64,000 bases of DNA, taken from positions 26,412,001 to 26,476,000 of the forward strand of contig NC_086376.1 in NCBI RefSeq assembly GCF_036588685.1, written 5' to 3'. Position numbers and translations under genes: made by a program. Source of the stretch: Mytilus trossulus. Taxonomy: Eukaryota. The notes under the pieces were generated by a model. The model was not told the origin of the DNA, did no database searches, and saw nothing but the letters and a program-made list of their open reading frames with translations. Positions 1,138 to 62,808 of the stretch are shown in pieces. Each line of letters starts with the position of its first letter. Position 1 is the first letter of the stretch.

Positions 1138-1239
1138 CTATTGTTTCAAAAAAAGGGAGAAGGTTTGGGCCCATTAAAACGTTTTATCCCGCTGCAAATG
1201 TTTGCACCTGTCCTAAGTCAGGAATCTGATGTACAGTAG
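1138..1239 (+). ncRNA. Twister-like motif, family A variant
   Basis: P2 GGGA/TCCC, GAAGG with loop TCCTAAGT, P3 TGCA/TGCA; cleavage-site TAA reads TTA. Confidence 0.62.
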
Positions 1240-2079
1240 TTGTCGTTTGTTTATGTAATATATACGTGTTTCTCGTTTCTCGTTTTGTTTATATAGATTA
1301 GACCGTTGGTTTTCCCGTTTGAATGGTTTTACACTAGTAATTTTGGGGCCCTTTATAGCTTGTTGTTCGGTGTGAGCCAAGGCTCCGTGTTGAAGGCCGT
1401 ACTTTAACCTATAATGGTTTAATTTTTAAATTGTTATTTGGATGGAGAGTTGTCTCATTGGCACTCACACCACATCTTCCTATATCTATCGTTATGTATG
1501 ATGTATCGCAAACATTGTTTATATTTGGTATATTTGTTGTTTTCCTTTTTTCAATTTATATTTCATTGAAATAAAATTGAACTGTTAAAACAAATTTCTT
1601 CATATTCTTATAAAATTTGTTTTTGAATATCTCTACGTTTAACGTTTCTTTGGGAAAATGTTCAATATTGAACTATATATAGGTTTTTATTTTAGTGTCT
1701 ATCAACCTTCAGTTTTATGAACTGTGTTGTCAAAAGTTTAAAATACTCTGATCGGTGATTATATAATATGAATCAAATTATTAGAACTGTTGCACTAGTA
1801 TACATTAAATAAAGTAAATATAACTATATACATATCGAGTTGAAGGACATAGTTTTTACGTGTAGGTGGTGGTTGGAAATACCAAGAAACCTATTGTATA
1901 TACTATCAAAGTAATACTGGAGGATTAAAGCACTTGTATATGCTAAATGGTAGCAAAAAGACATTAAATGCATACATAGCACTTTATTTATGAATTTAAA
2001 AATAGTGTATCTGTATAAAACACATTGACCATTTTCATAAATGTTACCAAACCGAAATCGGAGTAAGAGTTGTTACAAG

Positions 2080-2295
2080 GTTTGTTCTAATATGAGCAAC
2101 ACGACGGGTGTCACATGTGGATCAGAATCTGCTTACCCTTCGAAGCACTTGAGATCACCCAAGTTTTAATTGGGTTTATGTTGTTTCGTCCTTGATTGTG
2201 TTTTGTGTACTATTGTTTGTCTGTTTGTCTTTTGTAACCATGTCGTTGTCAGTTTGTTTTCGACTTGTTCTTCTGGTATATTTTGCCTCTCTTTC
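2080..2295 (+). repeat. 3'-end fragment of the Penelope-like family at 31.6-32.8 kb
   Basis: AGCAACACGACGGGTG...TCTGCTTACCCTTC...GAGATCACCC shared with the reverse complement of 31745-31845. Confidence 0.75.
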
Positions 2296-4540: not shown

Positions 4541-4963
4541 TATAAAAAAGAAGATGTGGTATGATTGCCAATGAAACACCTATCCACAAGAGTCCAAAAT
4601 GACACAGACATTACCATCTAAAGATTATCGTACGGCCTTCACCAATGAACAAATCCCATACCGCATAGTCAGCTATAAAAAGCCCCGATATTACCATTTA
4701 AAACAATTCAAACGAGAAAACTAACGGCCTTATTTGCATTAAAAAATGAACCAAAAACAAATGTGTAACACATCAACAAACGACAACCACTGAATTATAG
4801 GCTCCTGACTTGGAACAGGCACCTACATAAATAATGTGGCGGGGTTAAACATGTAAGCGGGATCCCAACCCTCCCCCTAACCCGGTACAGTGGTATAATA
4901 GTACAACATAAGAACGAACTATAAAATCAGTTGAAAAAGGCTTAACTCATCAGATGGACAAAA
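4541..4963 (-). mobile_element. Family A repeat with twister-like motif (4787-4893)
   Basis: Absent from the paralogous site near 12040; shares terminus and internal motif with 1100-1489. Confidence 0.8.
4787..4893 (-). ncRNA. Twister-like motif, family A variant
   Basis: GGGG-GAGGG...TAACCCCGC, P3 ACAT/ATGT, CCTG-TTCCAAGT-CAGG, P5 CCACTG/CAGTGG. Confidence 0.65.
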
Positions 4964-4965
4964 TA

Positions 4966-5100: not shown

Positions 5101-7229
5101 TTTTGTTTCTGTCTCATTGGTGTATACCCTACATTTTTGTATATTAATTTAGTTCTATTCTAACAAAATGCATAATATCTAATGATTTGAAAGTACTCAA
5201 TCATTATATAGTTAGTTCTTTTCATTAATACTATCAAATGGAACATGCAACTATCTAATTTTATTCTCTAAAATTTAATTATATATCCTTAAAATTAATA
5301 CATCCAAACACGCATTTCGTCTAAAATATTTGAAGAATCATTTGTGTAGCTCAAACTAAAATAATTGAAAGGTCAAAGCAATGAAAAACTATACCAGTTC
5401 ATTCGTTCGCAAACAATATTACAGGTTAGTAAAAGTAAAAGTTTGGTGGAAATGTTTTTTTTTAAACCATCTGTCGACATCCGTATGCAAACCAATCGTA
5501 TCCCTCTTCTAGCCATCGTGTGCGATTGTTAGTTCGAGGAAGTCTTATTAAACAAGAGCTCATGAATAAGAAGAGCAATAACTAGCATAATTCTTGAGTA
5601 TTACAATTCGCCATAAAGACAGTGTCTGCTCACTGAAATGTTACATATAAAGTGCTGATCTGCAGCATTTTCTATTCCATCATGAAATTGCCAGCGAGGG
5701 TTGGTTGAGAACTTAAGTCGGCTACCTCTAGCCTTTGTTGGTCTTGTATGTATTTTAAAAATTTATAAGTATTCCGTTCATATTGTATATTGCTAATCTT
5801 TTTGTCATAAAAGAAGCTTAAATTGAAATGAGTGGGAGAAAAGTTTTTTGTAATAGTAAAACAAGTCTTTTCCATCATTATCCTTTGCACCCCTGTACCA
5901 TATTGGTAATTCCTTTTAAGGAATAAAACCTTTGAAAACTTTTATATAAATCATATATAACTTACTCAAGGCTTTGTGGTATAAAGTGACACATGGCAGG
6001 AAAATTGTTTCCGATTTAGTTGTTTCTACGTTTAAAAGCACATTTATAACCTTTGCCAATAATACATGTGATGTGTGAAAAAAAAATTAGTGGCTAAAAT
6101 CCTTAATTGTTATTACAAATTAAAAAGATTTAAACTGATATTAGTTTGAGATATACATCAATGAAAAGACATTATATCGGCGATGACATTTTTTTCTAGT
6201 ACGCTGGTATATTTTTATGACTGAGGCATGCGATTTGTGCTTTATGAAAAACAAAAAACAGGTCCCGGTAAAACTTTCAAACAACAAAACGTGGGTTAAG
6301 TTATGAAGTATGATTGTTTTAATCGTTGTTCGATGACCTCTTTATCTAAAAAGTATAGAAACTATATAACTTTCATTTCAAACGACAAAATAAAATGTAG
6401 ACTATTAAAAATGAAATAAAATCATAAATAAAAAAAGCGGTCTTTTTTATAACACAATTTATGTATACTATTTTTCAATCATTCTTTATTGAATTAAAGT
6501 ACTTTTTACTCAGTTCCTGTCTCAATTTGTTTTCCTGTATTTTCTTTTCTTGGTAAATAAATAATGATTCGAAGAAATATTTTGTCTTATCCAGCTTGTC
6601 CTCCCTTTCCGAAAGACTGAATTGCCAGCCCGTCAAACTTGCCCTCCCTCTTCTTGAGCTCTCTTATAAAAAAGAAGATGTGGTATGATTGCCAATGAGA
6701 CAACTATCCACAAAAGACCAAAATGACACAAACATTAACAACTATAGGTCATGTCTGTTAGTTTTGTTTACAAGATAATGGAATTTGATGCGACTGTCAA
6801 ACAAGTGAGAGGTTAAGCTAGCTATAAAACCCGGTCTAATCCACAATTTTCTATATATTAAAGAAATGTCTATATAAAGTCTGAAATATTAGAGTTGTTA
6901 TCCATTCGTTTGATGTGTTTGAGCTTTTGATTTTCTCTTTTGAATACGGACTCTCTGTTATGAATTTTTCTCGGAGTTCAGTATTTTTGTGGTTTGATTT
7001 TTTTAACAAACCAGTTTAATACCTCTATATAATTACATTTTAAAGTATGATTCATTATTCTGATTGGCTTCACTGCAATCTCGCGTTATACCTTAATAAA
7101 CTTCATTACACAATAAAAATTTATCATTCATTATGACACGAGGTCCCACAATAAAGTGCAATTTGAATAAAAAAACCTTGATAAAAATCGTGTTTTCATG
7201 ATTCTAGCTATAAAATGTAATTATAATTA

Positions 7230-7360: not shown

Positions 7361-7938
7361 TTTTTAAATGTTACGGCGTTGTCCCAGGTCATTCATCATA
7401 ACAAAGTTGTTCCCCTTTACGAATGTTTACAAAATGGCGTATATTTTGTTTATTTCCAAACGTATATCAAGATTCGGTGATACTGTTGAAATATGGTTTA
7501 AACTTGCCATTATAAATTATGACCGTATGTTAAAGTCTCGGTTAATGTCTTCGTTTTGACTATCTTACTTGCATTTCTCTTTATTGGTAGATAAAAACTG
7601 AAACATCGAATAAATCACGTATCTAGACGCATTGATTACACAGAAATATCAAATAGGTTGGTGTCTTTTCTGGAGTTCAGTATCCATTTAATGCTTTAAA
7701 AAAGAGTCACTCAGCAATAAAAGTCTTGTTGTTATAACTAGATACTGATTTATTTTGTCACCGTAGTTATACTACAGCTGGGTTTTTTTTTGGTGTTTTT
7801 GTAAATAGAACATTTTACTACGAATCAATTGACACAATATGGTTTAATTTTTCCTTTATCGTTCAAATATTTTATATTTAACAGAAAAACAAACATAATT
7901 ATTTTCATAAAAAGGACTTTGATATTTTTTATAACTGT

Positions 7939-8494
7939 TAAAATTGAGAATGGAAATGGGGAATGTGTCAAAGAGACAACAACCCGACCAAAATAAAAAA
8001 CACAACAGCAGAAGGTCACCAACAGGTCTTCAATGTAGCGAGAAATTCCCGCACCCGGAGGCGTCCTTCAGCTGGCCCCTAAACAAATATATACTAGTTC
8101 AGTGATAATGAACGCCATACTAATTTCCAAATTGTACACAAGAAACTAAAATTTAAATAATACAAGACTAACAAAGGCCAGAGGCTCCTGACTTGGGACA
8201 GGCGCAAAAATGCGGCGGGGTTAAACATGTTTGTGAGATCTCAACCCTCCCCCTATACCTCTAACCAGTGTAGAAAAGTAAAAGCATAACAATACGCACA
8301 TTAAAATTCAGTTCAAGAGAAGTCCGAGTCTGAAGTCAGAAGATGTAACCAAAGAAAATAAACAAAATGACAATAATACATAAATAACAACAGACTACTA
8401 GCAGTTCACTGACATGCCAGCTCCAGACTTCAATTAAACTGACTGAAAGATTATGATTTCATCATATGAACATCAGGCACAATCCTTCCCGTTA
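7939..8494 (-). mobile_element. Family C repeat, 5'-truncated insertion with twister-like motif
   Basis: Near-identical inverted copy at 59791-60157; flanked by GTTAAA (7937-7942, 8491-8496); empty site at about 14452-14457. Confidence 0.88.
8176..8266 (-). ncRNA. Twister-like ribozyme, P5-permuted, best-preserved copy
   Basis: P5 GGTTAGAGGT/GCCTCTGGCC; P2 GGGG/CCCC; GAGGG; T^AA; GC; P3 CGCA/TGCG; P4 CCTG-TCCCAAGT-CAGG. Confidence 0.75.
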
Positions 8495-11194: not shown

Positions 11195-11238
11195 GCGTCC
11201 CTGATGAGTCTTGTGTAGACGAAACGCGCGTCTGGCGT
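11195..11238 (+). ncRNA. Type I hammerhead ribozyme in a retrozyme fragment (about 11150-11271)
   Basis: CTGATGA-GTCT..AGAC-GAAACGCGCGTC intact; closing pair of stem I mutated; fragment absent from the paralogous site near 3620. Confidence 0.85.
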
Positions 11239-15802: not shown

Positions 15803-15807
15803 ATAAG

Positions 15808-16621: not shown

Positions 16622-19600
16622 GCCTCCATGAACGACTTTTAGACGACATTTATTACGAACCCATAATGTATTATCGACATCAATTAAGTCATTCAGTGAT
16701 TGATGATCGAGAACTTTGGCTGTTAAAACGTTTGGGTAATGATGCCGAACTTGACTTTTTCATTCGTCGTTGTTTCTCGTTTCCTATCGCCGTATACATA
16801 ACGTTGGCAAGGTAAGGGAAGACAACATTTCAATAATAGAAAGTTGATAAACTATGCAGGGTTATGTTGAAGACTGTTTCGTCCCTTTTCTTTAAATTTT
16901 GTTTACATCGGAAGATATCAAGACCTCGTTGATATATATATTCCTTATTAACTTCACAAATAATACTCGATGGTCTAGATTCTAGGTACTGACGTTGTTT
17001 ATCATCTTTATTATGTGTTATAGTGGTCTTTTATTTGTTTGTGAATATTTTTAACATTAACTGTTGAGTCATTTTGTGTGATGTCCATGTGACGTGGCTC
17101 GGTACTTATACATCCCTTAATTGTCATAGAGTGCTATGGAACATTGTTGTGTTCCTTCTTTCGTTTTTGCTTTGTGCTTTTTTATATTCTTTTCTGTTTT
17201 TCTTTTTAACATAATCGTTTGTTTTTTATAGTGATTAAAGATTGTACCACTATTACTGACATTTTTACCAGTGATAGAAATAAGAAGATGTGGTATGAGT
17301 CCCAATGTAACACTCTCCAACTAAGTCACAAAGTGTAAAAAGTAAACCATCATAGGTGAAAGCACGGTCTTCAACACGGACCTTTGGCTCACATCGAACA
17401 CTTAGCTAAAAAGGGCCCTTAATTGACTAGTTTTAAACAATTCAAAGAAAAAAAACATCAGTCTTATCTACATGAAAAGGATATTGTGTCTGTTTTTTTC
17501 ACAGATTGTTGTCAATATCATAGAATTTAATGCCACTGTCATACATACAAGTGAGAGGTTCAACTAGCTATAAAACCAGGTTTCATCCATTTTGTACATC
17601 AGAAAATGCATGTACCGAGTCAGGAATATGACAGTTGTTATCCATACGTTTGTTGAGCTATAGATGTCTTCCATTTGATTATGTATTTTCCGTTTTGAGA
17701 TTTCCTCGGAGTTCGGTAATGTTTCTTGTTACTTTTTATAAAAACAGATCCGGTAGATAATGATTTTTTACGTATAAGCCTAATAACAACTATGTGAAAA
17801 TCGATACATCAAATATGCTATAAATAACTTATCAAGTGATAGCCCTTCCAGAAATAGCCACGAAAAAAAACCAATTCAGAAAACTATCATGCAAAACAAC
17901 AGTTCGGGAGGGGTTGTTCTATCCTAGAGCAATCAGAAAATGGGACATATTGTACAACTGTAAGGTCTCTGACTCAAGTCTGAAACTTTCAATGCTCAGT
18001 TCAGTCAGCTAATCAACTGACATCTTTTATTTGCACCTGTATATAAACTTCAACCAGTTTTTGTTCTTTTTATCAAATTTCAAAATTGTTTTCATGCACT
18101 CATTCCAAAATTGTCGTTTACCAGAAGAAGAAGAAGACTATGACTATGTTGACATGTTCATTCGTTTGCAAATTTAATGAATGAAACTTTGGAGTAAATG
18201 AAAATGTATGTACTTTAAAAGTACATGATGGCATTATTTGCTTTCATTTATTTGTAATGTACAAGTGTTTCTCACTAATTTAAATAATAGTAAACCCTTT
18301 TTATTTGATTACTGAACATGAAACTGGATTATGTTGTGTGAGTATTTACTAACGGTGGTTTCTTAAATAATTCATAGTACTTGTTAAAAGTTGTTTAAAT
18401 AATACTACTTTGAACCAAATGAATTTAATTGATACAAAAAGATATCTTACGCAAGTGTTAATCTTTAATTGAATATTTTACCCTAGGCAATTAAAATGTA
18501 AACACTCACCGGTCACCGGATCAAGTGCCATCTTTACCATATGGTATAAAGAATTAAAAAAAACATCCAATTTCACTGATTCTCCACTACGAATTGTTTA
18601 AATGTGTTTTTGATCTTGGAAAATATTTTAGTATTGAAAGTCAAAACGACCAAAGAACTGAAATCAGTGTACGTATGTAATTTTCATATTGAGATCGAAG
18701 TTAAAAAAAAATCAAATGTACTGAAATATAAAGAAATTTGATATCGTGAAAATATTTTAAAATACGGCTTACCGCATAAGGAATGTATGACTAGAGAGAT
18801 AACGGATCATATTCCATAACAGCGCCGACAACATCGCAAGTACATGCAAAGGGCGGGTGGGGGTGGGGCGGGGGCTTTTGCGGAGAGGAACGGTTAGTAA
18901 AAAAACTGACTTTGAGCTCACATTTTGTTTCAGCTCAAAACTATTGAACTTGAGGTATATTTGAGATAAGAACTTTTAAAAATGAGGATACCAAGACAGA
19001 CATGCATAAGTTATGACAAAAAGTAAGAACGAATAAAACTACAAATAATTTAAATAGTGAGAAATTTCACAAATATCAGTTTGATATAAGAGTAATCAAT
19101 TTCCCGTCAAGCAGTGTATAAAACATAGGAATACTATTTATTCAAGTTCTTCAATTCATTAGTTGTATATTTGTAACTGAGCTGTAAAAAGAGACAAACA
19201 TGACACAAGCACGTCACAGAATATTTTAACAGACGATCGTAAATTATACAAAATACTTTTTTTTTTACATTATTATGTAGCACTTATGCACTGCGCTCCC
19301 CTGAAGCACAAGACTTGTCGGCTATCTTGAAGAATTCCTGACAACCATGCATACTATTTGACAGGTTTATAGCAAGTAAATAAAATATATGATCTCACGA
19401 AGTTAAAGGGTGCCTTCGCATGGGTTGGAAAATCCACCTTAATATAAAAGACCTTTGACTTAATTCACTTTCATGTATTGATTTATGGACTTCGTGTTTC
19501 TATGTGAATTCAAAGTTAACCGATTGAAATCGGTTCGAACTTATATTAATCGTTTCGTACGACAAAAATAAAGAAACCATCATAATGTATCAGAGAGAGA

Positions 19601-24051: not shown

Positions 24052-24095
24052 ACGCCAGACGCGCGTTTCGTCTACATAAGACTCATCAGTGACGC
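24052..24095 (-). ncRNA. Type I hammerhead ribozyme, intact, in a retrozyme fragment (about 24018-24147)
   Basis: Reverse complement is identical to the 35490-35533 motif. Confidence 0.9.
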
Positions 24096-25370: not shown

Positions 25371-26015
25371 GTAAGTTTGAAAGATTTATGTTATTTTGAA
25401 ATAGAAGTAATGAAAAAAAATCGGAATTTTTGATCTTTTATATACTAGTAGAATGTTTTGTCAAGACGCTAATATAAAACATGTACAATTAAATCAAAAG
25501 ATTTATCCATTTGCTTTACGTTTTGCAGATCATGCAAAAATTACATGTATCGATGTTACGGTGGAAATTTTATTTAATTAAGAGTATATGATAATCCTGA
25601 AGATTTGGAAACCTTAAATTAGTACAAAACTCTGTGTGCGGTATTTAACTTTCAGATAGGATAAAAATTGTTACGATGACAGGAATATTTTTCAATATAG
25701 GACACAGCTGGAAAGAGAACGAACACGTCTTAGGAGTAAAATACTGATAATGTAAATACAACCCTTATGGTCATAGAATTTTATTTGATGACAAACTGAT
25801 TATGTCGGTATAAAGGGATCAAATTTTCCAATAACGTCTTAAAGTTATCTTTAGTGAGTTAAAGAGAAAGGGATATATCATATAGGTAAATTTCATTATG
25901 ATAGAAATACAAAGCAGATGAGTACATACAATTTATTTCACATTTTCATAGTAAAATAAATTAATCTATTAATATGATATACTTTCAGTTAACGTCATTA
26001 CCTCCAAGTGGAAAC

Positions 26016-31600: not shown

Positions 31601-31626
31601 CCAGATAATAAGTATAAAAGAGTGAC

Positions 31627-41115: not shown

Positions 41116-41263
41116 ACACATGTATTTGCAGGGGAATTTTTATACACAGTATTTCGTTCGTATGGACAAGATTTCTTATCTTATAATAAAACAAATGATT
41201 AAAGTAAAAAATACATGCCTAACTTATGAATAATTTAGATTTAAACTTGCTTGAGCGTGTTCA

Positions 41264-42803
41264 TGTAAAAGGTGATTTCTGGACAGTCAAATAATAACAA
41301 GTCCAATTCATCTTAGTCTAGGGTTCTTTATTCAACAATGATGTAATCATATAATTATTACAAACCCTACAAAATATAACAAGATACATATTAAACACAT
41401 TAATCTAAAACTACTATATTATACTGTGTTACAGTTATTATACCATTACTGCAGATCAACATAAAATCAGAACATTGAATGTTTATAGTTCTTATACAAT
41501 ATCAATACACAAGGTGACATGACATGCCTGATGATAATTAACACTTGCAAATATTCACTCATCGTTCATATACAATCATCAGCTTTGACAATTAAACATA
41601 CTACTATAATGTCAAGATCATATAACACTATTTCAATTAACTAAATAGATATATGTAAATCCATATTCTACAAATAACCATAGCATATATATCAACGGTA
41701 GATAACTCTATATTATATCAAATGTTCTTCACTGTCTTACATGAACACTATATATTATGCTATTTCAAGTATACATAAACTCACCAGTCTGTGGAACTGA
41801 GTTTAATAACTAACATCGACAGTCTACACAATATTAACAGTAACGATCTTCATACTTCTACAGTAATGGTAACAGAGGTTCACATCAAATATGGTTCTGT
41901 AAACAATGTATGACAATAATAAGTAATCTGACTTTAATATCTTAAAGGCATTATACAATTCATAATAAATTATACTAATCTTTATCTTTCATCTCGAATT
42001 CACAATTATAAATATAAGTAATCTTATTTCAATACTAAAAACATTAAGTACAAGTACAATTGTACTGTTAATTACATCACATTGGATATACCAATGTCAT
42101 TTCATGACTACATGACAAAAGGTCAAGGTCATTCATAAAAATAGATTAAATCTCTCTTTCTAACATTTATACTAAAATCTCTCAAATAAATCAGATTCAA
42201 ACAACACTCAAAGCACACTCTTTCATAGGGCTGGGAAGCTTACCAAAATGAATGTAATAAACATTCATTTTAAAGTTATGGATCCAGTTCATCCAAGACA
42301 CCTCAAAGAGTACAAAATGTAACTTACCATATAAAGTCATGATGTCCTGTTCCAGAATGAATTCCTTCACTATACTAATCCATAGATCTTATGGAACTAC
42401 TAATCAAACACAATATAGTCTATGAGCACAAAGTGCATCAAAACATACGAATATATCAGGATCACAACAAAGACATCAATCCTCCATTACTGTTTTCAAA
42501 ACTACCACCAAAACTGGGGGCAAGGCTTAATAAACCAATCAGAATACAAGAAAACCTATACACTCTAGTGAACAGTGAGTACTGATAGTAAAATCAATAA
42601 TAGGTAAATGCTACAAGGTAAACAGTTATATTAAATGGATCAATGAATAATCAATAGGCAATCAATAGGCAATCAATAGAATAAAGGTAAACTAAGTAAA
42701 CTACTCTGCAAATGAAAGAATATAATAAATGGTGTCTCAGAATAACCTATTAAACATATAAAATATATAAATGATTAATATGATAAAAATCCACTCTACC
42801 ACA
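41264..42803 (-). repeat. 3' LTR (1540 bp)
   Basis: Preceded on the minus strand by the polypurine tract; minus-strand AATAAA at 41327-41332; AATCAATAG(GC) x3 repeat near 42648-42680. Confidence 0.97.
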
Positions 42804-45800: not shown

Positions 45801-48367
45801 TTAAGTCCTACATCACGGAGTCTCTGGATAATTCTCTCTAGGCGTACAAGGTGTTCATCTATGGACTTCGAGAAGATAATAAGATCGTCTAGGTAGATGT
45901 AACATATACGTGTGTGTAAATCACCTAAGCATTCCTCCATGAGTCTTTGGTACGTAGCTGGTGCGTTGGAGAGTCCAAATGGAAGTCTGTTGAACTCGAA
46001 AAATCCTAACGGTCCAACGGTGAAGGCGGTGCGTTGTTTATGTTCCTCCTCAATCTCCACTTGATGGTACCCGCTCTTCATATCTAGCACTGTAAAATAT
46101 GTGTTGCCTCCTAAGGAATCCAGAATCTCTTCAATGCGTGGAAGCGCATATGAATCTTTAATGGTCTTTAGGTTAAGCTGACGGTAGTCTACACACATTC
46201 TAAGCTTTCCGTCCTTCTTACGTACTAATACTACATTCGATGACCAGGGTGAATGGGATCTTCTTATCACTCCTGCTGATAACAGTTGTTGCAAATGGTT
46301 ACGGACCTCTTCTAGCATAGATGGTGGTATTCGTCTGTGACGCTGCTTGAAGGGAACATTGTCTATCAAATCGATACGGTGACGTACTGCTGAAGTGTGT
46401 CCAATATCATCGTCTCCTTTTGAAAATATATCTTGGTATCTGTGTATGAGCTCTTTTCCTCTTTCATAGTCATCATCAGTTAGATCATCCATCGGTAATT
46501 TAATGTCCTTCATGATATCTTTAAATTCTTTTTCCTCCGGTGTAACAATATCTTCAATGTCAACTGGTTGAATTTCGCAAATGAGAGCTCGTGGTTGTAG
46601 TGTAACGGTTCTTGTTGTGACGTTTGGTATGTGTATTGGTATACTTCCTCGTTGTTGACAATCGTAAGTTATTACTGTTGGCATGATATCTAAATCTTCT
46701 GGTAAAGCTGAATTAATAGTTGGTTGTAGTATAGCACACATTTGTTGTTGTTGAAGCTGTTTGTCCAAATATCCATTGATTACAACTTGAGAGTTAGCTG
46801 GTATTGTAATCGCGTGTGTTTCGGCGGATTTCACAACTGCTAATCGGTTATGACATCTTTCCAATTCCTTGTTTCTAAGATTCATGCATCGGAATGCCAA
46901 ATACCATGGAGTGTGTAGATTAGCTTCTTGTAAATACCTTGGTCCAGTGTTCTGTTCTACTTCCTGCATTACAACTGACATGATGTTTGTTCCTATCAAT
47001 AATGGTACGGTTATGTTGTATTCGCTGTCCGGTATTACTAGAAATATGCCTGGATATGATGATCTTGTAGAAGATATTCCATGTAGTTGAAGGTCTGCTT
47101 CGATGTAACCAAGATAAGGCATTGATAGTCCGTCTGCACATTCTATCTTCAATATACGGGTAAGTGATTCAATCGGTGTAGATCTCATGTGTCTGTTGTA
47201 AAATGACTCGCTGATCGTTGAAACCGATGATCCTGTATCCAGCAATGCTTTTGTATCTATTCCATTTATGCTGATGGAAACTTCATTTGCCGGTCCGCAT
47301 AATCTATCTTCTTTGTTGTTTGTAGTTGGTGCTGATTGATAATCATTCGTAACTAGTTGATAATTCATGGCTCGATCAAATTTCCTAGAGTTATCCAGTC
47401 TTACTTTACATCCTATGGCAATATGGCCAAGTTGTCCACATCTCCAACATGTTTTCTGATGTTTCTCTCGTCTCTTATTCATATCCAATGGTCTATATGC
47501 TATAGTTTCATCTGGTGTTTGATGTATCATATTTGTCCTGTTAAGCTTACTGTTGTTGATCAATTGTTCTTGTCGTTTCTCTAAAAGTTCAATCTGTGAC
47601 ATCAACTGTTTAACTACAATCTCCATTTCGTTCTTATCCTTCTTCCTTGGTGCATTCACTCTCTTAGCTGGTATAGGTTTCTTTTGACTAGGTGTGTTCT
47701 CTTTGGTATATTCCTTCTGTTGATGTTCCAATTCTCGCATCGCCAATAAAAGATGGTTGAAATCCTTGATCGTATCAAACTTGTATCCTGAAATTCTCTT
47801 GAGTTCCGGTTTTAATCCTTTCCAAAACATTGATCGTAACATATCTTCTGCATCTTCCTCATAAATCTTTCCTTGACGGCGTGCTTTGTTGTAAATGTCT
47901 TCTAAGCGACATCCCCAGGTGGAAACATCTTCATCTTGTTCCTGTCTGGCTGTGTAAAACTGTGCCAATAACGCTTCCTTTGGATCTACAATTCCATAAA
48001 TACTATCCATCTTGTCGATGATGTCGTCGACAGTAGCTTTAGGGCCTAATCGCATGACTATCTTGCTAGGTTCTCCTCTAAGTGAACGTCTAATGGCCTG
48101 AGCAATTACTTCATGTGCATAGTTTTCTATGATAAGACATAACACTTGGTACCTCCATACTTCATAGGTGTTGTCTCCTTTATTGTCTCCGGAGAAGGTA
48201 GGAATCTTTGGTATATATCCAGTATATAATGATTTCTGATGTGAGAACTCCTTCATCCAATCTTTAAATGCATCTGGAGATTCTGCATTTGGCTTCATAT
48301 GCATATCCTTGAAGGCAGCAATGATGTTCCGAACTTCCTCTTCTGTTAAATCAACTGATGTATCCAT
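42890..48367 (-). CDS. Gag-Pol polyprotein: PNMA-like capsid, CCHC zinc knuckle, aspartic protease, RT, RNase H, integrase, acidic C-terminal tail
   Basis: Frame open 42890-48535; likely start MDTSVDL at 48367; motifs CWRCGQLGHIAIGC, LLDTGS, LPFGLSNAPATYQ, YLDD, TDACQTGLGAVL, HNDMGH...CPRC, MDF...SDQG...E. Confidence 0.95.
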   Translation of the reverse strand: MDTSVDLTEEEVRNIIAAFKDMHMKPNAESPDAFKDWMKEFSHQKSLYTGYIPKIPTFSGDNKGDNTYEVWRYQVLCLIIENYAHEVIAQAIRRSLRGEPSKIVMRLGPKATVDDIIDKMDSIYGIVDPKEALLAQFYTARQEQDEDVSTWGCRLEDIYNKARRQGKIYEEDAEDMLRSMFWKGLKPELKRISGYKFDTIKDFNHLLLAMRELEHQQKEYTKENTPSQKKPIPAKRVNAPRKKDKNEMEIVVKQLMSQIELLEKRQEQLINNSKLNRTNMIHQTPDETIAYRPLDMNKRREKHQKTCWRCGQLGHIAIGCKVRLDNSRKFDRAMNYQLVTNDYQSAPTTNNKEDRLCGPANEVSISINGIDTKALLDTGSSVSTISESFYNRHMRSTPIESLTRILKIECADGLSMPYLGYIEADLQLHGISSTRSSYPGIFLVIPDSEYNITVPLLIGTNIMSVVMQEVEQNTGPRYLQEANLHTPWYLAFRCMNLRNKELERCHNRLAVVKSAETHAITIPANSQVVINGYLDKQLQQQQMCAILQPTINSALPEDLDIMPTVITYDCQQRGSIPIHIPNVTTRTVTLQPRALICEIQPVDIEDIVTPEEKEFKDIMKDIKLPMDDLTDDDYERGKELIHRYQDIFSKGDDDIGHTSAVRHRIDLIDNVPFKQRHRRIPPSMLEEVRNHLQQLLSAGVIRRSHSPWSSNVVLVRKKDGKLRMCVDYRQLNLKTIKDSYALPRIEEILDSLGGNTYFTVLDMKSGYHQVEIEEEHKQRTAFTVGPLGFFEFNRLPFGLSNAPATYQRLMEECLGDLHTRICYIYLDDLIIFSKSIDEHLVRLERIIQRLRDVGLKLSPKKCSFLQRRVKYIGHIVSADGVEPDPEKVEKVATWPRPKTPEEVRQFLGFVGYYRKFIRDFSKIARPLTDLMPTTCKKKTRGKKKPIEPTSWHWNKEQNEAFETLKSHLSSPPILGFPDYKKPFEVHTDACQTGLGAVLYQQQGEHKRVIAYASRGLSKTERNYPVHKQEFQALKWAVTEKFGDYLQGNKFTVYTDNNPLTYVLTSAKLDVTGHRWIAALAAFDFNIIYRPGRNNADADGLSRLPAIISQQDCTPDIHGKESIKDPTNISTESVKAICSSIQQQPYVECLAVTTKDLASKVDTASTTKIDIREEQLRDPVIRTWIDYLSHRQKPRKEDIPSSPAHNQLFANFDKLVIQNGILYRRTTVNGDTKDQLVLPTSQITSILRSLHNDMGHQGRDRTTSLVKDRFYWHGMTKDIEEWIQKCPRCLKRKQLPNQRAPLTNIRTIQPMEIVCMDFLTLELSKGGFQHILVITDHFTRYAQAIPTRNMSARTTAEAFFNNYVVHYGLPERIHSDQGGNFESRLMKELCSITGVKKSRTTPYHPMGNGQCERFNRTLLSMLGTLQNHQKADWKSYLGPIVHAYNSTKQETTGFSPFALMFGREPRLPIDLALGIETTKEQKTNTKYVENLKERLKKSYELATNSAKIAQGRQKKHYDNKVRGAILLPGDRVLVKILSFDGKHKLSDKWENDSYVILDQPNSTIPVFTVRKESGHGRKRTLHRNLLLPIGSVSIDEDEEKEKPRPTPAPRLRPRKNRETDPQPTPSLHDSTLTSSDEESDDDYLVYVVTEPDVEDLSAPHSTFDELETQDDDDTVQDEDDDDQEHVAEQQDTGIEGDDLPSEKNDTVDPVLELDEVSETDQQVADATLFDDTEEPGQDRTVDETVDNVPQPDIEAPWIEVQPRRSVRARTLTATTKYKDFVVSKKSQPQPDWKSRADYLKDIASSGTFKGMEDQILAGLLKIATEK

Positions 48368-49885
48368 GATAATAGACAACTGATAAAAAATCAGTGCAAG
48401 AAAAAATAATCTGAAAGCAATATACTCAAAAGTCATGAGATATAATGCTAAAGTAAAATAAGAATTAGAGTGGTAAAAACAAAGATAGTAACCTGAAATA
48501 AGAATTGTCTGATTAACTATGTATGCATATACCAAATAACACTAATCTAATATTACAAAGTAATAAAACTAATAACTCACCCCTGCTTAGTAATTCATCT
48601 GTGTCTTCAATCACACATTCACTATGTTACCTGTGTGTGATCACAATACATCAATATGTGTACACCCAAAAGGTATACCTAGTACCAAGAACTAGAACTA
48701 CAAAGATGTACAACTATACAAACTCAGTCTCAAACACCAGTCACAATAACCAAACCAAATCAATAAATACCTGGTTCCTACAACTTCTAGTTGCTAAACT
48801 AAGTAATCCTGGTCTTCGTGAACTTTCGTCTATACTTACTTAATGTGGATATCTATTTCCACTATAAGCTTAAATATTTCTGACCGATGAACACTAAACG
48901 AAAGGACAACTACAACTGGGTATGGCTTACTTATTTACTAACCTGTTGTATTATGATATCTCAAATCATATAGTGCTACATGAATAATATGGCTTATTAT
49001 ACTTCTAATGTGTTCTGCTATAATGTGCCTTTTACCTGATGGTTTCCTCAAAAAGTCTTATGTAATGCTAAATGGGACTCGCTTTCGCTCACTTTTACAT
49101 ATACATATTTTATTCTTTATTACACAATTACAGAAATATCAATTTATATCTATATTGACACAATTTCAGATATAACAATATGACACAAAGTAATTACATT
49201 ATAGTTTCACCTAGTAACTAGTACAGTGTTACTTCAAATAACAATTAATAGAAATTCTAAAGAAAATATGCTCTAATTTTGAATGAAAAATGAACGGAAA
49301 AGATATTTAAAAGCCAAAATTTAAAGATAACTTTTGAATAAAAAAAAATATATTTCAAAAATATACACTAATCTGTGTCCACACTTTTGAAAAAAAATTA
49401 CACACCAATCTGTGTCCACACTTTTGAAGAAAAAAATTTTAGATTCACAAATGAAACAATCAAATGATTTTTTTTAAATATACACACAAAATTTAAAACA
49501 TGTAGTCTATATGTTCACTAAACAGTCTTTATCTGTATCTGTCAATACACACTAAAGTAGTAATTCTTTTCACAACTAATTATACAACTACTTTCCAAAT
49601 AATTTAAATACACTAAGTATTTCAAGTACACTACTATACACTGACAATAATTTACATATAAGTTTAAACAGTGTAGGTAATATATCTATTCAATGTCAAT
49701 CTAGTTTATTTATTTATTAATAATAATCACTCAGTTAGTCTTTATAATCGTATGTGATTAATACAGGTAAAATCTTTATATATTTTTCCACATATCGAAC
49801 CAATTACAAATAGTCAATATCTAGTACGGCTCATCATCTTTACAATAACTTCATCATATCTGCTGTACATGCCAGGTTCTTCGAA

Positions 49886-49898: not shown

Positions 49899-49899
49899 A

Positions 49900-51439
49900 T
49901 GTAAAAGGTGATTTCTGGACAGTCAAATAATAACAAGTCCAATTCATCTTAGTCTAGGGTTCTTTATTCAACAATGATGTAATCATATAATTATTACAAA
50001 CCCTACAAAATATAACAAGATACATATTAAACACATTAATCTAAAACTACTATATTATACTGTGTTACAGTTATTATACCATTACTGCAGATCAACATAA
50101 AATCAGAACATTGAATGTTTATAGTTCTTATACAATATCAATACACAAGGTGACATGACATGCCTGATGATAATTAACACTTGCAAATATTCACTCATCG
50201 TTCATATACAATCATCAGCTTTGACAATTAAACATACTACTATAATGTCAAGATCATATAACACTATTTCAATTAACTAAATAGATATATGTAAATCCAT
50301 ATTCTACAAATAACCATAGCATATATATCAACGGTAGATAACTCTATATTATATCAAATGTTCTTCACTGTCTTACATGAACACTATATATTATGCTATT
50401 TCAAGTATACATAAACTCACCAGTCTGTGGAACTGAGTTTAATAACTAACATCGACAGTCTACACAATATTAACAGTAACGATCTTCATACTTCTACAGT
50501 AATGGTAACAGAGGTTCACATCAAATATGGTTCTGTAAACAATGTATGACAATAATAAGTAATCTGACTTTAATATCTTAAAGGCATTATACAATTCATA
50601 ATAAATTATACTAATCTTTATCTTTCATCTCGAATTCACAATTATAAATATAAGTAATCTTATTTCAATACTAAAAACATTAAGTACAAGTACAATTGTA
50701 CTGTTAATTACATCACATTGGATATACCAATGTCATTTCATGACTACAAGACAAAAGGTCAAGGTCATTCATAAAAATAGATTAAATCTCTCTTTCTAAC
50801 ATTTATACTAAAATCTCTCAAATAAATCAGATTCAAACAACACTCAAAGCACACTCTTTCATAGGGCTGGGAAGCTTACCAAAATGAATGTAATAAACAT
50901 TCATTTTAAAGTTATGGATCCAGTTCATCCAAGACACCTCAAAGAGTACAAAATGTAACTTACCATATAAAGTCATGATGTCCTGTTCCAGAATGAATTC
51001 CTTCACTATACTAATCCATAGATCTTATGGAACTACTAATCAAACACAATATAGTCTATGAGCACAAAGTGCATCAAAACATACGAATATATCAGGATCA
51101 CAACAAAGACATCAATCCTCCATTACTGTTTTCAAAACTACCACCAAAACTGGGGGCAAGGCTTAATAAACCAATCAGAATACAAGAAAACCTATACACT
51201 CTAGTGAACAGTGAGTACTGATAGTAAAATCAATAATAGGTAAATGCTACAAGGTAAACAGTTATATTAAATGGATCAATGAATAATCAATAGGCAATCA
51301 ATAGGCAATCAATAGAATAAAGGTAAACTAAGTAAACTACTCTGCAAATGAAAGAATATAATAAATGGTGTCTCAGAATAACCTATTAAACATATAAAAT
51401 ATATAAATGATTAATATGATAAAAATCCACTCTACCACA
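49900..51439 (-). repeat. 5' LTR (1540 bp)
   Basis: Matches 41264-42803 at offset 8636; I saw only one mismatch (50749 A vs 42113 T); followed on the minus strand by the PBS. Confidence 0.97.
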
Positions 51440-57000: not shown

Positions 57001-57789
57001 ATAGATAGTTTGCTGTGTGAACCATATAAAGCCTTTCACCTGTTATGTGATAAGTATTGGAGTTAAAGAGACGTGATATTGATCAGAAAATGCACCGTCT
57101 TAAAAACGAAATTTTGAGATAGGAACATAGCCAAAATATATATTATTGATGTGATGATTTGATATGTTGATCCTTATTTTGTTTGTACAGTATTTTTTCA
57201 ATGATTCACGTAATTCCCCTATGACAGCATGGTTTAAAGGTCCACTTTTTCTTTAAATTATACCACGGTTATATATTGACACTGACTTTATCATATTGTT
57301 CAAAATCGAAAAAGAGTATGACATTGACAATAAGGTCAACGAAGAATTCATAGTCACAACTATTATATACTAGTATGTGAAAATCAAGTCAAGTATGCGA
57401 AAAATATGTTTGCCCGATTTTAAATATGCTTTTTTTCTTTTCTGTAAAATGTTAATCGTATTAAAAAATCAAACAAAAGTATACTCTTGTTACAAAAGTA
57501 ATACCAAAAAGTAAAAAATTCATTAAAACAGTTTTCCTTAAATGAATCAATGACACATTTTAAAACTTTATTTTGATAGATGATGGTTTTGATTTGGAGA
57601 ATATATATTTTTTTTTAATTTTCAAATATAAAAATGTTATAATTGTTACAACCTTATACCCAAAACACATGTAGACGGCATCACATGCAAAAATCAAGAG
57701 AATTTTGAAAAGACCTTTCTGAGGAAATAAATACACGGAAAATGGTACTACCTTGTCAAAATATTTGTGAATGACTAAGGAGCTGAAAT

Positions 57790-58105
57790 AATTTAGTGAG
57801 AGAACACCATCTATATAGCGGAAAGTGAGGTTAAAGGGTATTGATAACTTCTTTTCTTTCTTCCTTGGAAGTTCCTGTATGAAGTCAGCCTCATAAAAAT
57901 ATAGTAACAACTGAAGTCGGCAAGAAGAGGGGTACAATTGGTTCCCATGGGAATGCCGATAGTTCGTTGAATAACATGTCCTCCAAACATTATAAATATG
58001 TTTTCAATCAAGAAGTCAAGCATCTTCATAATCTTGATAATGTCTGTTTAAGAGAATTTTATGTTTGAATCAGAGTGATTTTTTACAAAGGGAGATTTAT
58101 CCCTC
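57790..58105 (-). pseudogene. Penelope-like RT fragment
   Basis: KMLDFLIENIFIMFGG...GIPMGTNCTPLLAD, frameshift, then YEADFIQEL...FRYIDGVLSLN. Confidence 0.85.
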
Positions 58106-59790
58106 AAGAAGACAATAATCTTTGGAATATTTTAGTATCAATGTCTGATTCACGGAACCTCTATTTTCTCAGCCACGTTATAAGTATATTTAAAAATCAC
58201 TTCCATTAACCCAAATAACAAATTTCCATATATAGTCATGATAGTCCGATGATATAATGAGCAGATTAAATCCTCACCTTTTTGATGCAACTGAGTTCTC
58301 CACATGTATTGGAGTGGTTTGTGATACTCAATCTTTAGTTTTCTATCATAAGTTTAGTGAAAAGTATGTATCTTCCATTTAATCCTCTGTTTATAGATTT
58401 AACAATACTCTTGATTTCTATTAGAATCTACTTTTGACTTCCACCATTTTTTGTAATGTCTTACACTTTTATTTAAAACTTATTCAATTTCACTGCTGTG
58501 GGGATAATAAAATAAAATTTCTTGTCATGTTTTAAAATTTAATGCAAAATGGCATCGATTGAGCTGCTTTTTTGTATGTGTATATTTTAGTTTTGATAAG
58601 ATTCATCTGTTTAATCTTTTGTCCACTTTCGCATTATACTATCAATTTCCTTATTTGATTCTTCATTTAACCTAGTCAATATGTATAATATTCTTTTTGG
58701 GTGAAATATATTGTTAGATATATATAAGCCAACAGGCCCATAAAAAAAATATCTTATTATATACCAACCATTAAGTCATAAGTCAAAATATAATGATGTA
58801 CGGGAATGTCCTTAAGTCAACTCACTGAAAAGTGTCTGTTTAGTAAAATAATTATACAAGGTTGAAGAGGTGCATTCACAACAAAAATATAAAGGAGTCA
58901 TATAGCTTTAGATGAAAATACAAATCTTGTCCCTGCCTTTACCATATGTCAAGGGATTAACTTCTGTATATGGTATATGATGTCACATTGATATATGTAT
59001 ATATCACTTATAAATTTTATCTACAAGCATGCAAACAAATATTATAGGTTTAAGACCAAGGGACACACGGATCAATTCATATCCAGCAATATGTAAACTC
59101 TCCTTTTAGAAAAAAAGACCACTATTATGAGCAGACTAGAAAAATCTCGAGAATCGTTCAGCTGTTTAAAAGAAAATAAGCAATGAACGCCTGCAGATCC
59201 TTTGATATATTATCTTTTGCATATAAAAGAAGTATTGTCCCATAAAGATACGTATCATATTCTTCTTTTTACAACTAGTAACTTCTGATTGGGTAGTATA
59301 AATACCCGTTTGAAAGTAACTTATTGATTGTTTATGTAAAAAAAAACACTGGACTATCATAATTCAAGCAAGAAAAATGACTTCTTGAATATTGCAACGA
59401 AGCCCTTTTTCTTTTTTAGGGTGGGGGGGGGGGGGGAGGGGTAGCGATATGTAGTAAAATTAAACCTTTGTCCTCCAGAATTATACCTCTAAATTATTCA
59501 AAGATTACAATGCAGAAAAACTGTAAGTTATCATGCATCATAAACATTTATATCCATCAGGATATTCATATGAATTTATCGATATGAATTAATACCAAAA
59601 ATAACCTTACAACAGTACTGTACTTGATTCGGATAAGTTTCCAATAATAAAGATTCCGTATATATAGTTTTCAAATTTATAATATCGTATCTTAAGCCTC
59701 ATTCCAAAATGGCCCAAAGCAATGTGTTGGAAGCAACATGTATTTGTTTGCTGATAGCATGTTTTGACATTTTTCTAGGATACTATACAC

Positions 59791-60157
59791 ATTTTAATGT
59801 GCGTATTGTTATGCTTTTACTTTTCTACATTGGTTACAGGTATAGGGGGAGGGTTGAGATCTCACAAACATGTTTAACCCCGCCGCATTTTTGCGCCTGT
59901 CCCAAGTCAGGAGCCTCTGGCCTTTGTTAGTCTTGTATTATTTAAATTTTATTTTCTTGTGTACAATTTGGAAATTAGTATGGCGTTCATTATCACTGAA
60001 CTAGTATATATTTGTTTAGGGGCCAGCTGAAGGACGCCTCCGGGTGCGGGAATTTCTCGCTACACTGAAGACCTGTTGGTGACCTTCTGCTATTGTTTTT
60101 TTATTTGGTCGGGTTGCTGTCTCTTTGACACATTCCCCATTTCCATTCTCAATTTTA
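59791..60157 (+). mobile_element. Family C repeat with twister-like motif
   Basis: Reverse complement of 7939-8307 at high identity. Confidence 0.88.
59832..59922 (+). ncRNA. Twister-like ribozyme, P5-permuted
   Basis: Same as 8176-8266 with one P5 mismatch; predicted cut 59875/59876. Confidence 0.73.
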
Positions 60158-62599
60158 CAATATAAAAAGAATGTCACATGCGATTTAGATACTGTTAAAA
60201 ATAATGATAAAAATTAAGACTGGATTTTTTGGTGAAGATAATGTAATAAGAATTGATCTTATAATTATGATGATAATGTAGAACTGCATAATAAATACTA
60301 ACCTACAAGTGTCCAAGAGAAACGCGGCGAAAAGAACGTCTGGTGCTTTCTAAATTCTCAACGATTTATTTTACGAAATTACCAGACATGAAAGATATAT
60401 GAAACCGCTGCTATTTAAAACCCAGCTCCAACAACGATTTAGGAGAAATACCGACATATGCAGATAATACTATTGATTACACAACTACTAACACAACTCT
60501 ATTTTAATATTCTTGAAATTGTAATAAAACACATCTAAAAACATAATCACCAACCTAATCTCGAATTATATCCAAATTTTTGTGGACTGTCCTAAATTAT
60601 TTTAGAAATTTGTTGTTATTCTGTGGTTATCATGTCGAAATGTACAATTATATTATCTTTTTTTTTTTTTTTTTTTTTATCTATTTCTATCGCCTCAGTG
60701 TTCTTGCATTTATTTGTACTGTATTGCTGTCGACCATGTAATGTTGTCATTTTGGTGTTATATTTAACATTGTCATACATGTAAAGCACGAGGTTTTGCT
60801 AGCCACAAAACCAGTTTGAACCCACCAATCTTTTTAAAATATCCTATACAAGTCCAGAATATGACAGTTGTTATCAAATAGTTCGTTTCTATGTATGTTG
60901 CATTGTCGTTTGGTTTTTGTTGCAATTCAGTGTTTCTACTGTTTCGTTGTTTTCCTCTTATAGTTAATGTGTTTACCTTAGTTTAGTTTGTAACCCGGAT
61001 TTGTTTTCGCCTAATCGATTCATGACTACTAAATATCGGTATACTACTGTTACCTTTATTTATATCTGGCAACTAAAGGGATTGTGGTTGATTTTCATAT
61101 GATGAAGACATCTTCTTTAGAAAATTCATATGATGAAGACATCATCTTTAGAAAAGCTTTGTTCTAATTGAGTCCTTGAGCTGGTATGACAGTAACTGCT
61201 AGAGTAGTCCTTTGTTAATTGATGTTCATTATTGTCTTTTTTTTTTATTTGTTCTGTAACCTGATTTAACATCGGAGTCGGACTTTCCAAACTGGGTTTA
61301 AATGGGAGTTTTGCTTGGTTTTTTTTATTCCACATTTGATTTTAGGGGGAAGTTTGAAACTTTCCGTGTTTAACCTTGCAGCATTGTTGTACCATTTCTA
61401 AGTCAGAAACCCATAATCTTTGTTAGTTTGGTGATTGTGTGTATGTGTTTTTTTTTAAATTTTATTTGTTTGTTTCGGAGTTTTGTATGGTATCCTAAAC
61501 AAAATTCAAATCGAAATTGTCAATGTCTGCAATAATAAAAAATAATGGGGAAAATATTACTCTGAGTATATCTAGCAAATGTAGTTAAACTTATGAATTA
61601 AGTGAAACTAGTTATAAAGTAAGTTAAGTAATGGTCTATTTTTGTTATAATGTTTTTGCAATTTAAAAAAATACAGTTTGGGTTATATATATTTTACTTC
61701 TATTGCATTATTAAATTTCTACAGTCACCTTGTCTGAACAGAATAATAAATTAATATACAAATTGGTGACCACTTTGGGCTCATCAAAATCTAGTTAAGC
61801 ACTAACGGAAGTTTTTTGTCATGACGTTTTCAATTGTTTTGTTTGTGTTTCTACTGAATAGAATACATACTACAAATTATTCCTTTTTACTAAGACCCAT
61901 CTGAGATATTTTTAAATTCCTCAGTCACAAAATATGTACATTGTTTTATTGTGCAACTGTTTCAAAAAGCTAGACAAGGTCTTATTAAACAATTATTATC
62001 TGAAATTTGATACAGTCTTCATGAGTGTTAAGTTTAACAAATGACTCTGTGAGCACGTATTTGTAATTTGATACCTCTTTCGTTTATAAGTAAGCATTTT
62101 CTAAATGACATGCATGTATTGTTGAATTTCTACATAAGTGGGAATAAATACAAATTAAAGTAGCATCAATAGTCTACAAAAAGCTTTGGAAACTTGCAAT
62201 TAGAGGCATAAGTACTTTTTCTAAATGCAAATCGCATAAGTTTCTTAGGGGGTACAAATTATTGTAAAAAAAAAGCAAACTATGGGAATCAGAAAAACAC
62301 TAAAAATATAGATACCGGGTAGTAAGTCAACACGCTATTACCAGTTATCTCAATGGATGCTGAATCAAAAACACAACAGAGTGTGTTGTTTTTTTTATAC
62401 TAAATTAAGCTCAGTGATGATTTTTCATGAAAAACAGAAGAAAAAAAACCAATACAAACAAGTGAACAAAAACCATTGACATCTTGAGGTTTACTATGGC
62501 CTTCAACAATTAATACAAATTTCGATACAATATGTCAATTCTATAAATCAAGAGTATATCCATTCCTCCTTAACATATCCTGTAAGTACATTTGCTTAG

Positions 62600-62808
62600 A
62601 CGACTGTCATACAGTGAGAGGTTTAGCGCTATAAAACCAGATTCAATCCACCATTTTCTACATTTAAAAATGCCTGTACAAGTCAGGAATATGACAGTTG
62701 TTGTCCATTCGTTTAATGTGTTTTTTTCTTTTGATTTTGCCATTCAATTAGGGACTTTCCATTTTGAATTTTCATCGGAGTTATGTATTTTTTTTTTTTT
62801 TACTTTTT
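62600..62808 (+). mobile_element. Family D repeat with twister-like motif (62603-62698)
   Basis: P5 ACTGTCATA/TATGACAGT, GAGGT, P3 CATTTT/AAAATG, CCTG/CAGG; other copies near 6750-7005, 13895-13985, 17485-17737, 54625-54708, 55885-56005. Confidence 0.7.

Follow-up and report, generated by a model that had tools for sequence, protein, structure and literature searches.

Among the Penelope-like elements of many invertebrates, Naiads are the most abundant, and the twister ribozymes form a class whose biological role is poorly understood. Here we examine a stretch of the Mytilus trossulus genome (GCF_036588685.1, contig NC_086376.1, positions 26,412,001-26,476,000, forward strand; hereafter the window, 64,000 nt, whose own positions are the coordinates used below) and an RNA module that recurs in it. 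This module is probably a twister ribozyme fold of Naiad-type retroelements, circularly permuted and type-P5-like, situated on the sense strand in the 3' untranslated region (3'UTR) and, as part of the same reading, catalytic. Among the closest described systems are the hammerhead ribozymes of Penelope-like elements; in metazoans these ribozymes, whose helix III is palindromic, are believed to work as dimers, and their cleavage in vitro is poor (PMC4209133, PMC6765202; the latter cites Lunse et al. 2016 on these hammerheads). Naiads themselves were reported to be without canonical hammerheads or ribozyme, from a search that used hammerhead descriptors only and in a text where 'twister' nowhere occurs, and this apparent lack was used to argue that the ribozyme is dispensable for such elements or merely parasitic on them (PMC8557442). 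Twister is represented in Rfam by clan CL00120, with the models twister-P1 (RF03160) and twister-P5 (RF02684); its type-P1 consensus runs in the order P1, UAA, a 4-bp P2, GC, P3, P4 with the loop (G)UCCCAAGC(C), UAAA, P2', GAGGG and P1'. The adenine next to the scissile bond is the general acid, C, G or A is tolerated before the cut, and cleavage is inefficient without P1, a helix that is dispensable but helpful (PMC8501958). Retrotransposons with twister are already known, but there the motif is of type P1 and occupies the 5' end of RTE-clade elements, in the form of the T-variants of the Perere-3/RTE non-long-terminal-repeat (non-LTR) retrotransposons of Schistosoma mansoni (PMC8501958, PMC7761336); those of Perere-3, in which P1 is relaxed and C, G or A precedes the cut, are active (PMC8501958).

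Read from 5' to 3', the mussel module presents one strand of P5, the P2' strand, GA, the T1 strand, palindrome 1, palindrome 2, the predicted cut site N^AA, P2, T2, P3, P4 and the closing strand of P5, and the 8-nt loop of P4 pairs with both the T1 and the T2 strands (Table 1 gives the parts of the best copy). Set against the Rfam consensus it matches twister feature by feature, as the initial annotation had proposed. Both have the UAA, GC, UCCCAAGC and GAGGG signatures; both have an NAA loop followed by a 4-bp P2 and a two-base T2, an optional P3 hairpin, a P4 loop of the form U-C-C-C-A-A-G-C/U, GA and then a GGG-type T1 after P2', and covarying pseudoknots. The module moreover closes through P5, like the type-P5 permutation of twister. 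It departs from twister as follows: 1) it has no P1 in cis and instead two self-complementary segments of 8-10 nt; 2) its P4 loop usually ends in U or G, not C, with T2 matched; 3) one position of P2 is often mismatched; 4) its Rfam scores are below threshold. With the T-variants it has in common a twister-derived motif in a retrotransposon, a relaxed or missing P1 and a relaxed base before the cut. The T-variants of Perere-3, however, are of type P1 and stand at the 5' end, releasing the 5' terminus and allowing translation, whereas the module is permuted, lies in the 3'UTR of a Penelope-like host with a GIY-YIG endonuclease (EN) and has two palindromes. Full-text literature searches on twister in combination with Penelope-like elements, Naiads, Mytilus, molluscs or type P5 brought up no description of it.

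The fold was evaluated in 29 distinct cores parsed by hand. GA precedes T1 in all 29, and an NAA loop stands directly 5' of P2 in 28 (N being U or C), the exception being the family C copy of the window, with UUA. In 26 of 29 cores the P4 loop conforms to U-N-C-Y-A-A-G-N, a fit that is no independent finding because this template was also the parser filter; loop positions 5-7 are AAG in 26 cores and CAG or ACG in the others. The helices P2, P3, P4 and P5 and both pseudoknots covary. The first P2 pair is G-C in 13 cores, U-A in 8, A-U in 5 and C-G and U-G in 1 each (97% paired vs. 43% after shuffling), and P4 covaries at two positions. In T1 the first pair (T1.a) is G-C in 26 cores and A-U in 3 (100% vs. 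91%), T1.b is G-C in every core, and the third pair (T1.c) is G-C in 11, U-A in 5, A-U in 1, U-G in 2, G-U in 1 and U-U in 9 (69% vs. 46%); T1.b and T1.c were counted from the hand parse (the model alignment places a gap inconsistently there). The first T2 pair is C-G in 29/29 and never varies, and the second is A-U in 10, C-G in 10, G-U in 6 and G-C in 1, with two mismatches (93% vs. 50%). In the model alignment of 37 distinct sequences 93.7% of the cells are paired; shuffling lowers this to 65.3% (none of 500 shuffles reaches the observed value) and sliding the partners by 1-3 columns to 33-42%; this alignment was fitted to the structure by the model, which tells against us in that it inflates pairing somewhat, a minor concern given the size of the gap and the independent parse. 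The covariation score is 0.689, versus 0.185 in the shuffles and at most 0.088 in the slid alignments, and both-sided changes are found in 21 of the 24 pairs, including all nine of P5. Minimum-free-energy folding of single copies misses the pseudoknots and yields weak z-scores (-0.5 to -2.2).

There are 41 G-U cells as against 10 A-C cells, and so the pairing works on the sense RNA strand only, which would exclude a DNA-level or antisense reading. This imbalance, together with covariation that survives the controls, upholds the earlier proposal of an RNA structure under selection. It is highly improbable, by contrast, that stems and palindromes act at the level of DNA, for example as protein-binding palindromes, cruciforms or cDNA signals. 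Perfect palindromes do read alike on both strands, and the cores here are 4-base palindromes; against this stand the sense-strand pairing, the covariation of the pseudoknot pairs, the position of all matches on the coding strand of the reverse transcriptase (RT), and the fact that the palindromes keep their self-complementarity and not their sequences, which argues against a sequence-specific protein site.

The elements that carry the module were traced from family A. When the genome was searched with the family A tail, more than 1,100 candidates came up, many of them 99-100% identical and some 4,015-4,020 bp apart, and the tandems L016 and L017, composed of 4.0-kb units, contain a single long frame. 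This frame encodes, in order, a GIY-YIG-type motif (YLLT-stop-NKPGCGIQYVGET), a CxC motif (TSCNCSNS), PADKAANN and RT motifs (FDFSTLY, GIPMGTNCAP, FRYLDDIL), and is broken by three in-frame TGA codons, two of which are at cysteine positions of relatives. The module lies 313 nt 3' of the stop and the unit ends about 240 nt beyond it; across elements, the module stands 160-850 nt 3' of the open reading frame (ORF), in the 3'UTR, and 115-250 nt from the 3' end. In the relative L127, an intact ORF of 1017 aa matches Pfam GIY-YIG at residues 137-228 (25.9 bits, cut-off 22.6) and, under the cut-off, RVT_1 at residues 737-868 (19.7 bits); its translation contains LTCDCSHS (CxC) and PADKASNN (a DKG-type motif), and the module follows 161 nt after the stop. 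Neither GIY-YIG nor RVT was matched in Pfam searches of the family A ORF pieces, because the pieces are cut at the TGA codons and the RT is divergent. Judged by domain order and motifs, the parents are Naiad-type Penelope-like retroelements and not DNA transposons, the alternative that the initial annotation had named; the Naiad-type RT that it had predicted is present as a GIY-YIG, CxC and RT ORF 5' of the module both in the family A units and in L127.

At least 97 RT copies of family A, about 99% identical, were found by genome search, which indicates that the family is very young; every copy examined has an identical module, and a protein search of this genome returned only such ~99% identical family A copies. 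The 5' ends of family B copies are scattered, and some copies reach 50-150 nt further upstream of the module, for which reason we rejected family B as a short element that starts at the module. The scattered ends of family B and the 5'-truncated tails of family A would both be products of reverse transcription primed from the 3' end. The N-terminal GIY-YIG, CxC linker and C-terminal RT of the mussel elements are likewise those of the Naiad clade (PMC8557442), whose members, clam selenoprotein Naiads included, are also alike in having tandem units of ~4 kb and a very high copy number in a bivalve. The clam selenoprotein Naiads further agree with them in TGA at cysteine positions and in an element resembling a selenocysteine insertion sequence (SECIS) just after the stop, which in family A is found at L017:8283-8347, 52 nt after the stop codon (32.8 bits, gathering score 35). 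On account of these SECIS-like elements and in-frame TGA codons, mussel Naiads appear to encode selenoproteins. Further SECIS-like elements lie between the Naiad stop and the module at L121:2106-2170 and L071:1913-1977 (range 28-33 bits), and in the window there is one of family C at 608-665(+), about 470 nt upstream of the module at 1138-1239 (SECIS_1, 28.4 bits, E 0.0035, gathering score 35).

A metagenome search with an alignment of RT pieces only, and hence a selection blind to the RNA motif, gave 80 loci with RT identities of 38-98%. R1, a covariance model made from two family A copies only and the nested structure of the best copy, matches 32 of the 80, all on the RT strand; 31 of these matches are downstream of the RT, and the one upstream, in L124, is where the tail of a preceding tandem unit would lie. 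R2, a covariance model rebuilt from the metagenome matches with no window sequences and run with filters off, adds three loci to the R1 matches. Among the loci with at least 650 nt downstream the module is present in 17 of 27, and it is found in nearly all at RT identities of at least 51% with enough sequence; the RT identity of module-bearing contigs goes down to ~42%. Wherever a contig has the length to show both, the EN piece lies 5' of the RT. The module-bearing contigs L084, L103 and L135 have zero matches in this genome, where window-derived queries give thousands of candidates, and the module thus also occurs in elements of other organisms.

On the tree of the linked RTs, the pair state changes 7 times at the first P2 pair (P2.1), 3 times at P4.3, twice at T1.a and 8 times at the second T2 pair; at the tips P4.3 and T1.a are all paired, P2.1 is paired in all but one, and the second T2 pair is unpaired in two. 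Because they recur on the RT tree, the compensatory changes are repeated events and not one inherited change, so that in outline the covariation survives shared descent as well as the slid controls. We therefore give very little weight to the possibility that the twister likeness is a chance one within a single conserved retroelement tail, with covariation arising from shared descent. Such a view could point to Rfam models that stay under threshold, to within-family copies that are near-identical and carry no independent information, and to the homology of the families across the module. The initial annotation had called the families otherwise dissimilar, and on this point it was mistaken: they are homologous over the module, with 60-64% mean column identity, and also have in common the stretch UUGUUGUC immediately 3' of it. 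Against a chance likeness, apart from the independent recurrence on the RT tree, are the slid controls, which keep relatedness and still lose the pairing, and the coincidence of ten or more twister signatures in the right order, permutation allowed for.

Between T1 and the cut site the module has its two palindromes. Palindrome 1 is a perfect Watson-Crick palindrome of at least 8 nt in 28 of 29 cores (4.6% in shuffles), has a length of 8-10 nt and is represented by about 18 different sequences, for example UGAGAUCUCA, GGGCGCCC, GCAGCUGC and UGGCAUGCCA, in which the central four bases are self-complementary too. Palindrome 2 has at least 8 paired bases in 26 of 29 cores, with a single unpaired central base in several lineages; its last base immediately precedes the cut, or stands one position further 5' where the base before the cut is C. 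The palindrome cores are 4-base palindromes such as GATC, GGCC, GCGC and CTAG. In family B, 2 nt inserted at the exact centre of palindrome 1 set two subfamilies apart, UAGCGCUA as against UAGCUAGCUA (L056/L057 and other loci), and both versions remain perfect palindromes. A hairpin leaves its central three or four bases free to vary, and a one-base loop is impossible. We accordingly rejected a P1 made of two small hairpins, given that the centres are always self-complementary and some have a one-base centre; selection that keeps the whole stretch self-complementary suggests that two copies pair with each other. In a thermodynamic model without pseudoknots the palindrome segment has -2.5 to -6.5 kcal/mol alone, and the homodimer gains 10-17 kcal/mol. 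Perfect palindromes in place of P1 argue for a dimer.

If the module is a permuted twister, the RNA would cut itself between N and AA. With P1 missing in cis, the RNA would be active as a homodimer: palindrome 2 of one copy would pair with that of the other into a helix beside each cut site, as P1 does elsewhere, and palindrome 1 would add a second intermolecular helix. The paired copies could belong to separate transcripts or to different units of one tandem transcript, and cutting would turn tandem or read-through transcripts into unit-length RNA. Both cleavage and dimer lean here on the precedents of the Penelope hammerheads and the Perere-3 twister variants. By analogy, the role may be comparable to that of the dimeric hammerheads of other Penelope-like elements: the module and the minimal type-I hammerheads of these elements are alike in the superfamily of their hosts, in a cut-site helix reduced to a palindrome, in tandem hosts and in extreme sequence variability with covariation. 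They differ in ribozyme class and fold and in placement, the module being in the 3'UTR, whereas Penelope hammerheads are in terminal repeats. A stronger proposal would be that Naiads exchanged the Penelope ribozyme for a P1-less type-P5 twister that is active only as a palindrome-paired dimer, which would be the first dimerisation-gated natural twister; this we advance tentatively, with rather more doubt than confidence.

Several observations weigh against the ribozyme reading: 1) Rfam scans of the window, at gathering score and at E<=10, and of the region 59700-62800 gave no twister match; RF02684 gave nothing above its cut-off over the whole genome; and RF03160, whose gathering score is 67.2, aligns only with the 3' half, reaching 20-24 bits in three modules, far under threshold because the 5' half of the module is permuted away. 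2) The third P2 pair is mismatched (A-C or U-C) in 14 of 29 cores, and in the B/E type (families B and E of the window; L124, L127) P2 is one base shorter, with 3 nt and about two pairs. 3) The nine U-U cores at the third T1 pair all belong to one clade. 4) Most mussel copies have AAGU, not AAGC, in the P4 loop. 5) No P1 helix is present within one molecule, where the two palindromes intervene. 6) About 10 Naiad-like contigs with an RT identity of at most 46% and ample downstream sequence have no match with R1 or R2, the module being either absent from them or too diverged. 7) The family C copy of the window has a T at 1185, giving UUA and not UAA, where its relatives L072/L073 have adenine. 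8) Ten truncated family A tails have scattered 5' ends, none of which starts at the predicted cut. With regard to the second point, a normal P2 in the B/E type was tried and rejected, no register yielding more than about two pairs. With regard to the fourth, most lineages have U or G as the last base of the P4 loop, and there the T2 partner is altered to match, and the contig L121 has the canonical AAGC paired with GC. The T at 1185 lengthens palindrome 2 of family C to 12 nt (UAAAACGUUUUA), and other genome copies of this young subfamily are 95-100% identical over 390 nt; a young subfamily that lost the cut-site adenine suggests that an intact cut site may not be needed for spread.

On these grounds one could hold that the selected fold is a structural or dimerisation signal and no catalyst, with a twister likeness that is inherited or convergent and cleavage weak or lost. 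The signal might be recognised by the Naiad RT/EN for target-primed reverse transcription, or, like a retroviral dimer linkage site, it might join two RNAs and so lead to template switching and tandems. The fixed 3'UTR position in every lineage would fit it, as would the two strictly kept palindromes, which favour RNA-RNA pairing, the full units standing in 4.0-kb tandems, the weak P2 of the B/E type, the family C copy without the cut-site adenine and truncated copies that never start at the cut. Yet such a signal gives no reason for the exact active-site bases of twister (NAA, GA with the catalytic-position G, loop AAG) down to ~42% RT identity, nor for keeping both pseudoknots covarying, and Penelope hammerheads too cut poorly in vitro yet stay conserved (PMC4209133). 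We consider a purely structural signal unlikely, and prefer a ribozyme fold.

A separate class of motif was met in the search with RF02684, whose best genome matches, G000:C2:74857349-74857426(+) (L002:1501-1578) and G000:C9:64010332-64010376(-) (L001), are non-permuted (GCCGGUCCCAAGCCCGGAUAAAGG...) and score 24.9 bits. This P1-type motif may be a twister variant like those at the 5' ends of RTE/Perere-3 elements.

Within the window, which is AT-rich and crowded with repeats, R2 returns exactly 11 matches at E<=1 and no extra ones, and R1, with filters off, recovers eight of these at E<1 (Table 1). They are the 11 copies of the initial annotation, on the same strands and within a few bases of the positions it gave. 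Its description of several copies as decayed likewise agrees with the four lowest scores (19.9, 19.4, 14.8 and 12.0 bits), and all pairings that it listed are in the sequence: T1 as GGG/CCC, AGG/CCU and GGU/ACC, P2 as GGGG/CCCC and GGGA/UCCC, T2 as GC or AC with GU, the P3 variants and both palindromes. In the host genome of 1.3 Gb, the 17-nt pattern of the P4 hairpin has 39,965 matches, compared with 0 for the reversed control; about 40,000 repeats of the mussel genome carry the 90-100-base module, 11 of them in the window. At G000:C1:1156743-1156915(-) five exact copies of the P4 hairpin follow one another at 39-nt spacing, with a sixth 76 nt before, a part of the module amplified into a short tandem array.

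Table 1. Copies of the module in the window and parts of the intact family A copy at 8176-8266 (parts listed in 5' to 3' order of the RNA; bits and E values from the covariance models R1 and R2)
Feature	Position	Strand	Details
Family C module	1138-1239	+	R2 61.1 bits at 1142-1233; P2 GGGA/UCCC, T1 AGG/CCU, palindromes UGGGCCCA and AAAACGUUUU
Family A2 module	4787-4893	-	R2 60.5 bits at 4796-4889; palindrome 1 GGGAUCCC, P4 loop UUCCAAGU, longer P3, outer P5 CCACUG/CAGUGG
Family B module, decayed	6793-6895	+	R2 19.4 bits, E 0.006
Family A module, intact	8176-8266	-	R1 124 bits, R2 89.3 bits; within 555-bp 5'-truncated tail 7938-8492, 99.6% identical to full-length unit in L017
Family B module, partly decayed	17535-17635	+	R2 31.2 bits; P4 CAUG/CAGG, loop UACCGAGU
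Family E module (B type)	40430-40521	-	R2 37.5 bits at 40429-40522; palindrome 1 GCUAGC, loop UACCAAGU
Family E module, decayed	40717-40824	-	R2 19.9 bits, E 0.004
Family A module	59832-59922	+	R2 84.9 bits; 373-bp truncated tail 59791-60161; one P5 mismatch (module position 6, G to C)
Family E module, decayed	60769-60868	+	R2 12.0 bits, E 0.58 at 60773-60898
Family D module (A-like), decayed	61338-61418	+	R1 18.2 bits; R2 14.8 bits at 61332-61442
Family B module	62603-62698	+	R2 49.3 bits; 20 genomic relatives aligned; T1 GGU/ACC, T2 AC/GU, palindrome 1 UAGCGCUA, P5 ACUGUCAUA/UAUGACAGU; P4 loop one base short
P5	8266-8258 with 8184-8176	-	5' strand GGUUAGAGG, 3' strand CCUCUGGCC
Junction after P5 5' strand		-	UAUA
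P2'	8253-8250	-	GGGG
GA junction	8249-8248	-	
T1	8247-8245	-	GGG, then spacer U
Palindrome 1	8243-8234	-	UGAGAUCUCA, then spacer C
Palindrome 2	8232-8223	-	AAACAUGUUU
Predicted scissile bond	between 8223 and 8222	-	module positions 44/45; AA follows
P2	8220-8217	-	CCCC
T2	8216-8215	-	GC
P3 hairpin	8214-8203	-	CGCA-UUUU-UGCG
P4 hairpin	8202-8187	-	CCUG-UCCCAAGU-CAGG; then junction AG

No Naiad ORF lies within the window, which contains only truncated tails of these elements, an unrelated intact LTR element and two small RT remnants. The remnants, at 32046-32834(-) and 57761-58038(-), are Penelope-like, with 25-59% identity to Naiad-related proteins, and no module adjoins them. The LTR element has an intact gag-protease-RT-RNaseH-integrase ORF of 1881 aa at 42890-48535(-) (Pfam RVT_1, RT_RNaseH, rve, PNMA), situated between the repeats 41263-41512 and 49899-50148, which are 100% identical over at least 250 bp; it looks like a very young Ty3/gypsy-type LTR retrotransposon. 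A further ORF of 445 aa, at 25974-27311(+), has no Pfam match. The hammerhead core (CUGANGA ... GAAA, three helices) was found at none of the modules, and no Hammerhead_1 match in the window scan overlaps any of them. Four near-threshold Hammerhead_1 matches are present elsewhere, at 24052-24095(-) with 33 bits, 35490-35533(+) with 33 bits, 35845-35888(+) with 28.4 bits and 11195-11238(+) with 27.1 bits (gathering score 34), with a distance of 355 nt between those at 35490 and 35845; all four resemble retrozyme-type repeats and are distinct from the twister-like modules.

A conserved twister fold in a similar place would reverse the argument that the ribozyme is dispensable for Penelope-like elements (PMC8557442). 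It would also add tens of thousands of eukaryotic examples to the twister class, in a permuted 3'UTR form, and give a natural design with P1 provided in trans. Given that the module is short and its predicted cut site exact, the proposal is testable, and the dimer idea could be addressed through palindrome mutants. If true, two ribozyme classes would have converged on one job in Penelope-like elements, and a dimer-dependent self-cleaving RNA would be a general requirement of Penelope-like retrotransposition that is met by two unrelated folds.

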